Of a stretch of 64,000 nucleotides of DNA, positions 7,471 through 55,117 are shown piece by piece. Below the pieces are notes generated by a model that saw only the letters and a program-made list of their open reading frames with translations, was not told the origin of the DNA and did not search any database. The position numbers and the translations under genes are program-made. Origin of the DNA: Octopus sinensis (lineage: Eukaryota); the NCBI RefSeq assembly GCF_006345805.1, contig NC_043004.1, positions 83,204,001-83,268,000 of the forward strand, in the 5' to 3' direction. Every line of letters starts with the position of its first letter. Positions within the stretch are counted from its first letter, which is position 1.

Positions 7471-8396
7471 AGTAATTGGTAAACGTTTTCTCCAAATTGA
7501 TTATATCCTACTTCTTCACAACCAAATAATACCCATAGTTTTCCCTCTAACCGTAGATTAATATTCACTTGATTAAATTCTACCCACCATTCTTAAAATT
7601 TAGCGGTCAACTATCTTGAAACAGATACACCAATAACTCCACTCTAGTCCAATGTCTCCCTTTTAGCCCTTTTCCGCCACGCAACTAAACACTCTGCTTA
7701 CATAACAAATAACTATCAAATTTCTATTTTCATGTAGGTATGTACATATCCTTCTTTCTATATTATTTACTCATAACTGGTTATATATGTGCGTGTGTGT
7801 GTGTGTGTTTGTGTGTATGTGATTGTGTATGTGTGTATGATTTTGTATCGATATGCCTGTTTGTGTATGCCTAAGTACATCCAAGTTTATATCTGTCTAG
7901 ACGTATAAGTACCCATACGTATGCGAAGTGGTGCAGCAAGATAAACATGCATATTCACTTCTATACACAACACCTTCTAGTTTCTAGCTAGTCACATTGG
8001 AAAACCATCCATTTGTTATCTGAAAAATTCTATACACCGCATTACTTTTGCTATTTACACTAGCTATTTCGATATTTTCATTCACATAAATATTTATATA
8101 TATATATATATATATAATATATATATATATATATTATATGATATTCTTTAATATTGTAAAATGTATATAGCACTCCCATCTATACATATTAGCCAACCTA
8201 ATATACTACATGAACAACACTGGATAAACATTCTTAACCATTTGAAGTTGAATTGAAAGTTTTAAATTTACAAGTAATGGACCTCAACTACAAAGAACCT
8301 TCAAATAAACCTGAGAGACAGTAAGCCTAACTTCACTAGTAACCTATGAATACATATATCAAATCGTGATCCATAAAGATAAATTATAACACTTAC

Positions 8397-9356
8397 TGAT
8401 CGGTTTAAACGAAGTCCACACCAAAACATTCCTATGCAAAAGAGTATGTTAATGATTAACATCAGTAACATATAAAGTTGTACATATGGGGCAGATTTAA
8501 AGTAATTATTTATCATTCCATACGTGGCAATGCAGCCGCTTGTTATATTAGCAAAGACGATAAATCCGGATGTTAACTTCAGTGATTCGTTGACAAATCT
8601 CAGTATTGCGCTTAGAGTATCGTGTCTATTACATATTTCTTCAATCCCTCTATGTGTCTTGAACATAACAGGCTTATCTGATTGTTGTTCTTTTAAGCAC
8701 TTCTGGGCCTCATTCGCCACTTTCTTAAACTCATAAATAAGTGTAAGACTGATTATAAGATCAAAATAGAGATCAAATAACACGGTCACCAAAGAGAAGC
8801 CATTAAAGATGAGTTGTATTGTTAAAACTGGAATGTAATATGTATTATTTGTTGGTACAGGAAATGTTAAAAACATCAGAAAATCGCTACTGCAGAGCGG
8901 CAAGATAAGATCCATACACATATAGAAAATGACAAGCCCGGATATATATACAAATAAAGCTGTATATGAAAATATTAAATTACAGTTATAATATTTTATA
9001 CTTTCCTCTTCAATTTCAAGATCGGCGAATTTTTCAAATAGTTGCTTGTCGTAAGAATCCCCGAAGAGTTTCACCAAACAGAAGAGAGTTAAGAAACTCC
9101 TGTAGAGAATTATGTAACAATACACAAATATTCCACTTGTGTTAGCATTTTGCATTTGTATTAAAGTCACAATATGCCGAATCGGGTTTACAATCAAATA
9201 TATAATGTATAATAGGTAAATTGCAGAGAAACAAATTACACTCAAATCGAGTGTTTTCAAGATGGATTTATTCATAATATGTTTCCGAATATTACTAATT
9301 TTTCGATATAATTCCAACATTTTAAAGAATTGTGTTTGTTTTGCGTCCATACTCAT
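8397..9356 (-). CDS. GRL exon 1: long first coding exon of a gustatory-receptor-like (7TMIC) protein, TM1-TM6, 320 codons (318 from the second Met)
   Basis: Six hydrophobic segments. The long loop between TM4 and TM5 (YEFKKVANEA...EICNRHDTLSAILRFVNESL) matches the GR/GRL H..L...+N pattern. The frame reaches CGLRLNRS then TCA|GTAAGT (8396-8391). The ORF-track tail 8301-8396 is probably intron read-through. Confidence 0.8.
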
Positions 9357-9880
9357 TCTAATTCCGTCTTATAAAGAGAGTTTTGCTTTCAAATAGATAA
9401 ACACGACAGTAGATTCCACACGATATATAAAGCAATTTTTCCGCTCTTTCTTTCTTGTCTAGATTTGACTGTGTTGTAAAATTTAATGTAACGGTAAAAT
9501 TGAAACAATAACCGATGGCAAAATAAAGTTATTATGAAAGGCCTGTAGAAATTCGACAGCATTAGTGTATATGATGTTAGCTTTAAGCAGATGCTAAAGG
9601 TCTGAATGCCTATGAACTAAAAAGTTTGTTGTCATGAAAGTATAAAAGATGTAAGTCCACTTTCTATGAAACATGGTCAATATTCCTTTATGTCTAAACA
9701 AAAAACTAATCCGTATTCTTATTTACAGTCGATATATTATTAAATAGCATGTATATTTATATACATAAATATACATATATATAAATGCACAAACACACAT
9801 ATACACATATGTATCCATATGTGTGTGCATACATGGGTGTGTGTATATATATATCTGCATACATACACACAAACACACAC

Positions 9881-10097
9881 AGAAACGTTAGCGCGCTGGG
9901 CGAAATGCTTAGCAGTATTTCGTCTGCCGCTACGTTCTGAGTTCAAATTCCGCCGAGGTCGACTTTGCCTTTCATCCTTTCGGGGTCGATAAATAAAGTA
10001 CCAGTTACGCACTGGGGCCGATGTAATCGACTTAATCCGTTTGTCTGTCCTTGTTTGTCCCCTCTGTGTTTAGCCCCTTGTGGGCAATAAAGAAATA
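9881..10097 (+). mobile_element. tRNA-derived SINE (5'-truncated), octopus-type
   Basis: B-box-like GAGTTCAAATTCC, a core cgactttgcctttcatcctttcggggtcgataaa and an A-rich end. A related copy lies at 40752-40980. Confidence 0.75.
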
Positions 10098-52400: not shown

Positions 52401-53378
52401 CATACCACCTAATAAACACGAAGAAGAAGAAGAAGAAGATGATGAAGAAACAACAAAAGCTATAAAACAAATGAAATCCAAACTAAAAATAGAACAGCAA
52501 CGAACCATGATAAAACGATGGCAAGAAAAGCCCCTTCATGGTAAATACTGCACTAAACTAAACGCAAAAGAAATAGACAAAGAAAGATCCCAGCAATGGT
52601 TGAGAAGCTCAGGACTCAAAGCAGAAACAGAGGGATTTTTAATTGCAGCACAAGACCAAAGCCTCCCCACCAGAAATTACCAAAAACATGTAATGAAAAG
52701 AAATATTACAAGTAACTGCAGAATATGTGGAGATGGACAAGAAACAATAAATCATATTATCTCTAGCTGCCCAGTCCTGGCTAAGAAGGAATATATTCAC
52801 AGACATGACAGAGTTGGAACCTACATACATTGGAAGCTATGCCAACATTATGGAATAACAACAGAAAAAAGATGGTATAGGCACACACCAGAAAAGGTTA
52901 CAGAAAACGGGAAAGCAACTCTGGGATATGCCGATACACACAGATAGAGAAATTAAGGCCAACAGACCAGATATAGTTGTCAGAGACCATGAAAAAAAAA
53001 ATGCTTTCTAATTGATGTATCAATACCGGCAGATGACAACGTGTCTCTAAAAGAAATGGAGAAACTCTCAAAATACAAAAACCTGGAAATAGAGGTAACT
53101 AGAATGTGGAATCTGAAAACAGAAGCAATTCGTATCATAGTAGGTGCATTAGGCATGATAAAAAAATATTCAGACAAATACATAACAAAAACACCAGGAC
53201 TTACAAACACATATATCATACAGAAAATTGCACTACTAGGCACTGCACACATCCTACGCAGAGCACTTTCCATACAATAACCATCAGAGCATCACAACAA
53301 ATCACAGCACATACCGAAGGCACACAGAGCTGCGCTCGGTAGTGAAGTGAAAGCACGCTATAAAAATAAAACTACTGA
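49138..53378 (+). mobile_element. Full-length family A R4/Dong-like LINE (several frameshifts, one premature stop)
   Basis: Collinear ORFs 49641-50114, 50174-51136, 51349-51660, 51662-52030, 52180-52947 and 53041-53280, then 3'UTR and (AAT)n tail. Confidence 0.95.
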
Positions 53379-54163
53379 ATAATAATAATAATAATAATAA
53401 TAATAATAATAATAATAATAAACTATGACTACCCATGTATTTTAATTTAACTTTAAAAAAAACAAAAAATAATGAACGAACTAGTGAGTCTAGTTTAATG
53501 TCCTACCAATGTATACTATGAGTTTCTTTGCCCTAGGAGTCGGAAGACACTCGGCAAGAAATGGAAGCAAATTTGAAAGAAGGAAAAAAAGATAATAATA
53601 ATAATAATAATAATAATAATAATAATAATAATAATAATAATGGTAATTGATAACGCACAAAATTGAATTTTTGACAGAATTTGCAATATTTTCTGTTATT
53701 TCTATTAGATTTGATGTCTTCATTTTTATCTTTTTTAAATGCTACAATTAATATACTGGATTTATAAAGAAAATTGGACTGATCTCCATTACTGTACGCT
53801 GTAAGTTATCATCATCACACAAGTTAAGCAAACGTAGCCGGTTCAGAGATTGTGAAAGAGAGAGTAAGAAAACAGGGAGAGTGAAAATGGAAGACAACGA
53901 GAAGGACAAGTGTTGAACTTGTGTACTCTGTTTTAGTGGTACTCTGTTGAATTTGTTTGGATGAGAGGCAAGGCTAATTTCCCCATGACATGGACACAAA
54001 GCGAAGAGAAGTGGAAGAAACGACAAAAGATCATTCCGTGTAGCTGACACGTTAAAAAGTCGGTCGTTTAAACACCTTTTATGGTGTTATTTCTAACATA
54101 GCAATTCAAATATAAGGCAGACTGGATAGCTTAGAGTTATGTAATAAAATTTATGCTACATAC

Positions 54164-55117
54164 CGATCTGTTTAATTGAATTCCGCACCAAAGCACTGCA
54201 ATCCACGCAGACAGACATCCTGAAATCACCACAGCTACATAAATATTTATATACATGTTATTTTTGAAGGTATCAGTTATTATTCCGTAAGTAGCAATGC
54301 AGCAGCTAACCATACTGCCGAACACGATAAATCCTGAAATATAATGCAGGGAGTCATTTACTAATCTCACTATTGAACTCAGAGCATCATGGGTGTTACA
54401 TATATCTGTAATCTCTCCATGGTGCGTAAAATCCGAGTTCGCTGATTGCTTTTCAGTTACATAAATCTGTGCTTCATTCGCCACTTTGTTAAAGTGACAC
54501 ATAAGAGTAACTGCGATTAGAAGATATATATACACATCACTTAATACGGATAAAGCTGATATAGAATTAAATACAATCTGCATTGCTAAAAATGGGATGA
54601 TGTAAGAGTAAGTATTTGGAACAGGATATTCGTAAAAGATCAACAAATCATAACTCAACAGCGGTATAATGAAATCCAGAGTTATACTCCCAATAATAAT
54701 TAGGCATATCAATATATACACTGATTTATATATTATAGGTTTGTTATACCAGATTCCATCTTCATCATCAATTTTAAGTCCAGCAAACTTTTCAATTAGC
54801 TCCTCGTCTCTAGATTTTCTGAACAGTTTTATGAATGGAGAGAGAGAAAGGAATAAACGGAAAAATATTATGTAAATATATAAAAACATTTTATCATTTT
54901 CGAGCGTTTTCAGTCGTATTAAGGAAACAATGTGACGAATAGGGTTTAGAATCAAATACATGTAAAAAAGTGCAAAGAAAACTTGTAGACAAACTGATTT
55001 AAGTTTGTTTGATTTCATCAACGATATATCGATTATTGATTTGCCACAGCTATTAATTTTTCGATAAACTTCGAGAGTTTTCAACAACTGCGTTTCATTT
55101 GTTTTCACGGTTTCCAT
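54164..55117 (-). CDS. GRL exon 5: divergent paralog, first coding exon, TM1-TM6, 318 codons
   Basis: Shares NPIRHIV, IIPLLSYDLLIFYEYPVPN, FNKVANEAQ, EITDICNTHDALSSIVRLVNDSL and CCIATYGII. Donor TCG|GTATGT at 54163-54158, after WCGIQLNRS. Confidence 0.8.

Follow-up and report, generated by a model that had tools for sequence, protein, structure and literature searches.

A 64,000-nt stretch of Octopus sinensis DNA, C8:83204001-83268000, was analyzed as a whole and is referred to below as the window; negative window coordinates denote positions to the left of its position 1. The stop-to-stop list of open reading frames (ORFs) contains five long open frames in it, all on the minus strand. We conclude that these five exons are very probably alternative first exons of a single gustatory-receptor-like gene of the Pfam 7tm_7 family, LOC118764607, which are joined to a common three-exon tail. 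The exons and the ORFs that enclose them are the following:

8397..9350, minus strand: variable first exon 1; 318 codons from the second Met (9350), the first Met being at 9356; ORF 8301-9368
16918..17871, minus strand: variable first exon 2; 318 codons; ORF 16822-17892
35830..36783, minus strand: variable first exon 3; 318 codons; ORF 35734-36804
38713..39666, minus strand: variable first exon 4; 318 codons from the second Met (39666), with an in-frame Met upstream at 39705; ORF 38602-39750
54164..55117, minus strand: variable first exon 5; 318 codons, ATG at 55117, the most distal exon of the locus; ORF 54137-55150

Every window exon encodes the N-terminus through transmembrane helix 6 (TM6) and stops at a phase-0 splice donor. 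The donor reads TCA|GTAAGT in exons 1, 2 and 3 (first intron base 8396, 16917 and 35829; the bar marks the splice boundary), GCG|GTAAGT in exon 4 (38712) and TCG|GTATGT in exon 5 (54163). When re-read on the minus strand, each of the five canonical donors matched the position given in the initial annotation of the sequence. Its distance of 954 nt from ATG to donor in exons 2, 3 and 5, and from the second Met of exon 1 (9350), was also reproduced, and the second Met of exon 4 (39666), which had been overlooked, yields 954 nt as well. Elsewhere in the genomic cluster to which the locus belongs, a GTRAGT or GTATGT donor follows the homologous codon in 27 of 29 paralogous exons. The five exon proteins can be aligned without large gaps; exons 1-3 share 92-94% protein identity, and their identity to exons 4 and 5 is about 45%. 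A variable-exon profile retrieved exactly five intact copies in the window, and in-frame stops occur shortly 5' of the exon's own ATG in all of them.

The initial annotation had predicted that the constant exons encoding transmembrane helix 7 (TM7) lie left of position 1, and three such exons were located there, 26-32 kb beyond the left edge. This nearest downstream tail, designated set E, comprises three small phase-0 exons between window positions -26002 and -32091, which encode 23, 30 and 18 residues:

C8:83177998-83177930 (window -26002 to -26070), minus strand: set E exon a; acceptor ..cactactag|GTT, donor AAG|gtaagc
C8:83174048-83173959 (window -29952 to -30041), minus strand: set E exon b; 30 codons
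C8:83171965-83171909 (window -32035 to -32091), minus strand: set E exon c; ends in ..IQTKSL, followed by the stop

The tail exons measure 69, 90 and 54(+3) nt and are bounded by three phase-0 introns, in agreement with the gene structure described for gustatory receptors (GRs) in PMC6175461. Together they cover the cytoplasmic segment or loop after TM6, plus TM7 (…GSFITYILVVIQTKSL). The TM7 motif TYhhhhhQF was reportedly described by Robertson in 2015; the last exon of set E encodes GSFITYILVVIQTK, in which T, Y and Q are kept. Of the TYxxxxxQF motif expected for the tail, the TYxxxxxQ type is present (TYILVVIQT), but the final F is replaced by T. Introns connecting the window donors of exons 1-5 with exon a would measure 34.4, 42.9, 61.8, 64.7 and 80.2 kb, respectively. 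The interval from the window to set E contains three more variable exons, at C8:83201137, 83195700 and 83182266; the first and the last are open, and the one at 83195700 is a pseudo-exon with one stop. The content of the locus is 7 open variable exons and 1 pseudo-exon, and it is one of eight such loci.

Joins of exons 4 and 5 to this tail are already present in RefSeq, where they are labeled 'uncharacterized protein'. XP_036361417.1 (LOC118764607 X1, 389 aa) consists of exon 5 followed by exons a, b and c of set E and is letter-for-letter identical to the predicted product. XP_036361418.1 (LOC118764607 X2, 375 aa) is built as X1, but from an acceptor inside exon a, and is 14 residues shorter, while in XP_036361419.1 (X3) and XP_036361420.1 (X4) the 3' part of exon 4 is joined to set E. 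The internal acceptor (CAATTTCAG|GAC) is situated 42 nt inside exon a, is employed by RefSeq X2 and X4, and removes the 14 residues VHSITRSIHYMQFQ directly after TM6; the same 14-residue skipping is found in the X2 isoform of Octopus bimaculoides. In that species, LOC106880719 X1 and X2 combine the exon 5 orthologue with the same tail build and are 87% identical over 390 residues. With two window exons joined to one tail in the isoforms of LOC118764607, the proposal of one locus with shared C-terminal exons finds backing in predicted gene models. The exon 4 isoforms X3 and X4 begin at an internal Met (residues 178 and ~160, respectively) and not at the ATG of the exon; an acceptor inside exon 4 that would explain this was not found, and the internal start could come from partial transcript support or from an internal start site.

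The same construction recurs at another tail set of the cluster. XP_036361421.1 (389 aa), the sole named relative in the first database search, extends 71 residues beyond the donor position, and matching to the genome resolved these residues into three exons of 23, 30 and 18 codons with phase-0 splice sites, the last of which encodes MIGSFITYILVVIQTK.., a GR-type TM7. Its long exon lies at C8:82748768 and its tail starts at 82785443, which means that the first intron skips three other intact paralogous long exons. Equivalent joins are seen in LOC118764608 X1 and X3 at the tail set starting at C8:82785443, with X1 passing over three intact paralogous exons. In Octopus vulgaris, the 'hypothetical predicted protein' CAI9727304.1 links an unrelated N-terminal sequence to pieces of two different variable exons, and this is probably a chimeric model that arose from the shared-tail architecture.

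Splice acceptors were sought with a crude position matrix built from only 17 distinct tail-exon acceptors. Real tail acceptors score 12-24 bits on this 17-site matrix, with one exception at 6.5; between -200 and +30 of the variable-exon ATGs the best acceptor-like site reaches -1.5 to 6.8 bits, the background median being 3.5. No acceptor-like site of 8 bits or more was found with the crude matrix from -300 to the donor of any window exon. The variable exons were rejected as internal cassette exons because acceptors were not found by the matrix scan, and the scan, crude as the matrix is, is compatible at the sequence level with exons that can be joined through their donor only. Profiles of tail exons a, b and c, which give 50-79 bits on every true copy, scored at best 4.7-7.1 bits in the six-frame window (E ~1 or more, i.e., noise) and did not exceed 10.9 bits within the 1.5 kb flanking each of 29 paralogous long exons. 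The noise-level scores in the window led us to reject private tail exons in the spacers, in line with the initial annotation, which had found no TM7 exon there. The duplication unit common to exons 1-3 spans ~1.2-5 kb and carries no tail exon.

Assignment to the GR family relies on a profile, a fold and the gene plan. Three products exceed the curated cutoff of 26.6 bits for Pfam 7tm_7 (PF08395): exon 2 joined to set E (28.9 bits, residues 34-387 aligned to profile positions 25-367 of 370), XP_036361420.1 (X4, 30.3 bits) and XP_036361419.1 (X3, 27.4 bits). The match is marginal and each of the three has the tail attached; the Pfam scan gave no match for the exon-only proteins, XP_036361421.1 and the other three full-length products, and a PDB sequence search with XP_036361421.1 and the exon-only proteins returned nothing. 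The AlphaFold2 model of XP_036361421.1 (pLDDT 76, pTM 0.74; low confidence in the tail region) has seven long helices plus an N-terminal helix. In a Foldseek comparison of this model with PDB, ranks 1-18, 20 and 21 were all insect proteins (Gr43a, Gr64a, BmGr9, OR, Orco), with a probability of 0.99-1.00, a TM-score of 0.42-0.61 and a best E-value of only 3e-3, while no other match exceeded a TM-score of 0.26. In the fold alignments, identity to insect GRs amounts to only 9-14%. Members of the insect chemoreceptor superfamily are about 350-500 residues long, with seven transmembrane helices and an intracellular N-terminus, and form tetrameric ligand-gated cation channels. The octopus product is 389 aa long and displays seven hydrophobic stretches that match the seven long model helices; hydropathy assigns six helices to the variable exon and locates the seventh where exons b and c meet. 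The three above-cutoff 7tm_7 matches and the insect GR/OR/Orco fold uphold the GR or GR-like (GRL) assignment proposed at the outset.

A profile search of 1.84 billion representative proteins retrieved 25 relatives only; those with names all belong to Octopus and the remainder come from short assemblies, which points to a lineage-restricted, very diverged family. GRL proteins have been recognized by the TM7 motif, 3' phase-0 introns and seven helices, with reference to a four-position TM7 motif (PMC7746228). The octopus products resemble the GRL proteins of non-arthropod animals in their length of ~390 aa, seven hydrophobic helices, TM7 motif and 3' phase-0 introns, and differ from them in belonging to this lineage-restricted, very diverged family.

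The surrounding cluster was mapped from search tables and 52 short loci, and the 2.72-Gb genome was searched with protein queries that included a concatenated one. It extends over 0.77 Mb and contains at least 40 open variable exons versus 8 tail sets. In two whole-genome searches, eight clear copies of exon b were found in the 2.7-Gb genome, all within C8 82.79-83.18 Mb and four per strand; beyond these there were two weak matches, both outside the cluster. The full-length open long exons of the main subfamily number 35, to which a divergent subfamily adds ~12. Every open long exon has a tail set downstream on the same strand, the cluster being arranged in two arms with converging transcription, and all opposite-strand copies are degenerate (5/5, with 3-9 stops each). 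The divergent subfamily occupies C8:82.895-83.049 Mb (minus strand); its ~12 open long exons are 22-28% identical to the window exons and have a diverged tail exon b downstream, at C8:82889868. For the tail exon b at C8:83067850, no variable exon was detected with the queries used.

In a maximum-likelihood tree of variable exons, the loci do not form clades. Exon 5 groups as sister with an exon from the neighboring locus (support 100/100), and exons 1-3 are sister to two exons of a locus in the other arm. This topology implies that blocks of several variable exons were copied, which suggests that the multi-exon plan is older than the present loci. At the tail set C8:82830727-82833683 (plus strand) the upstream variable exons are all decayed and exon b carries a Pro-to-Leu change, so that it may be a dying locus; an exon-b-like sequence of 33 bits at C8:83348454-83348549 (plus strand), ~80 kb to the right of the window, may mark another related locus.

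Exons 1-3 are young duplicates with 94-97% nucleotide identity (exon 3 versus exons 1 and 2, 96%). When the paralogue at C8:83201137 is included, the exons are 94-97% identical and the intron flanks 87-91%, and the pairwise ratio of nonsynonymous to synonymous substitution rates (dN/dS) is 0.41-0.97. At the sequence level, these values are compatible with use of exons 1-3 and do not prove it. We consider it rather unlikely, though a real possibility, that exons 4 and 5 alone are used, exons 1-3 being recent copies that are silent or decaying and have simply gained no stops so far. The absence of exons 1-3 from database proteins speaks for this, as do a dN/dS of 0.97 for exon 1 versus exon 3 (other pairs, 0.41-0.70) and the many decayed exon copies in the cluster; on the other side, all three have an ATG, an open 318-codon frame and a consensus donor, their exons are more similar to one another than their flanks are, and chemoreceptor isoforms are often too rare for annotation. 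Exons 4 and 5 have diverged to an identity of only ~45% yet have kept frame, ATG and donor, unlike the expectation for unused sequence; neutral decay is exemplified by the stop-ridden exon copies within the cluster. This retention in distal exons also argues against the shared-tail models being a pipeline artefact, in which exons were chained by homology and only the variable exon nearest to the tail is truly spliced. Although RNA support for the XP_ models is not visible, and the 2015 O. bimaculoides annotation has the tail (A0A0L8FWC7) and a variable exon (A0A0L8G2C3) as separate models, we regard such an artefact as very improbable: wrong-strand copies have decayed, and isoforms X2 and X4 differ by the internal acceptor, a type of isoform normally called by the NCBI pipeline only from transcript alignments. 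It is barely credible that each long exon is an independent gene, with private downstream exons or with read-through past the donor to a protein without TM7. ORF calls from other octopus assemblies do read through the donor, but these are plain ORF calls on short contigs, and a TM7-less product would be without the pore helix; tail profiles peak at 7 bits in the window against 50-79 for real copies, the donor is retained in 27 of 29 paralogues, and RefSeq models are spliced to the common tail.

Several points nevertheless weigh against five alternative first exons on one tail. The splicing evidence consists of NCBI predicted gene models whose RNA support is not visible, and X3 and X4 start within exon 4 without explanation. 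No protein using exon 1, 2 or 3 is present in the databases searched, so that their use is something we infer, and the dN/dS range means that some of exons 1-3 and their paralogue could be unused young copies. One promoter per variable exon is likewise what we infer, and part of the 26-kb stretch between window and tail was covered by whole-genome searches only. Overall, the interpretation given in the initial annotation, a multi-promoter locus with variable N-terminal exons and a constant TM7 tail, is supported.

If the five exons are alternative first exons of LOC118764607, transcription would start at the own promoter of one variable exon, and the cap-proximal donor, that of the chosen exon, would be spliced to constant exon a. 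Variable exons further downstream, for which no acceptor was found, would be removed within the 34-80 kb intron. In the solved insect channels, the TM1-6 part holds the ligand pocket, whereas the TM7 part lines the pore and anchors the tetramer. By analogy, the octopus products would differ in TM1-6, the ligand pocket of the insect relatives, and would share the tail with its cytoplasmic anchor helix and pore-lining TM7, which forms the tetramer anchor in those relatives.

Apart from the variable exons, the window contains exon remnants, retrotransposon copies and low-complexity tracts:

11061..11676, plus strand: inverted degenerate remnant of the 5' half of a variable exon, 8 stops
1..202, plus strand (whole element C8:83203567-83204202): second inverted remnant of the 5' half of a variable exon, 9 stops, running off the left edge
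675-3038, 19948-22723, 24134-27764, 29915-34523 and 49602-52947, plus strand: non-LTR (long terminal repeat) retrotransposon copies
41241-44908, minus strand: non-LTR retrotransposon copy
~57200-61200, 40100-40650 and 45150-45710: low-complexity or microsatellite tracts (IYIY, THTH and poly-I/N in the ORF list)

The remnant at 11061-11676 matches the 5' part of exon 2 together with its upstream sequence in inverted orientation, at 91% identity. Of the two inverted remnants, this one precedes exon 1 by ~1.7 kb and the other precedes the next exon leftward by a similar distance; both seem to be part of the duplicated unit. Introns and spacers are filled with non-LTR retrotransposon copies that encode reverse transcriptase, endonuclease and zf-RVT domains; several are 93-97% identical, which suggests recent activity. 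The largest low-complexity tract (~57200-61200) is located just upstream of exon 5. A k-mer count revealed no motif common to the regions upstream of the window exons. A palindromic motif, TCTTAAGAAGCTTA, occurs 250-490 nt 5' of the ATG in a subset of variable exons elsewhere in the cluster and is absent upstream of the window exons; it may represent a promoter element or belong to a repeat.

The closest known parallels are found among insect GR genes, in which three short exons, separated by phase 0-0-0 introns, come after one long first exon (PMC6175461). Tandem long first exons that share three common short last exons are described for Drosophila Gr28b, Gr39a and Gr23a and for Blattella Gr60a-m (PMC6175461, PMC2204066). 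The octopus locus agrees with Gr28b/Gr39a-type loci in the 7tm_7 family and in its plan, with a long exon for TM1-6, three short phase 0-0-0 exons and TM7 last, as well as in tandem long first exons, probably used alternatively, on one strand with a single set of short exons and no private last exons. It differs in its host, a cephalopod mollusc and not an arthropod, in its far longer introns (34-80 kb, packed with retrotransposons), and in that eight loci stand together in two convergent arms. The neighboring octopus locus has 16 open first exons over 280 kb, versus 13 in the largest cockroach locus cited. The mechanism is already known in arthropods; the novelty lies in the lineage of the host, the length scale of the introns and the clustering of eight loci. 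In the literature searched, the coverage of which is incomplete, we came across no account of GR-like genes in octopus or any other cephalopod, and none of the alternative-first-exon GR design in a mollusc.

A second likeness is with clustered protocadherins (alpha, gamma) and UGT1A, which also possess many variable first exons with their own start and without a 3' splice site, arranged in tandem upstream of few constant exons over ~100-300 kb. In these systems, splicing links the cap-proximal donor to the first constant exon. The protein families are unrelated. Regulation of the protocadherin type involves stochastic choice of one promoter and exon per cell, CTCF-type control and a conserved promoter element ahead of every variable exon; no motif common to the octopus window exons was found. 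We think it unlikely, if worth stating, that the octopus GR-like loci run in protocadherin fashion, as eight multi-promoter loci that each express one variable exon per sensory cell. If they did, the largest locus would form one unit of 280 kb with at least 16 first exons, every isoform would use a common pore and anchor helix, and octopus would have an unrecognized chemoreceptor repertoire beside its nicotinic-receptor-like chemotactile receptors.

The roles of GR-like channels outside arthropods are largely unknown, and research into octopus chemosensation has concentrated on another receptor family. Gene-finding programs built to expect complete genes will call the variable exons as truncated ORFs or chimeras. 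The occurrence of this gene plan with alternative first exons in both a mollusc and arthropods raises the question of whether it is ancient or convergent. Together, the cluster would represent ~40 candidate receptors made from 8 common tails, and because current protein sets lack most of these, they would escape homology-based surveys.

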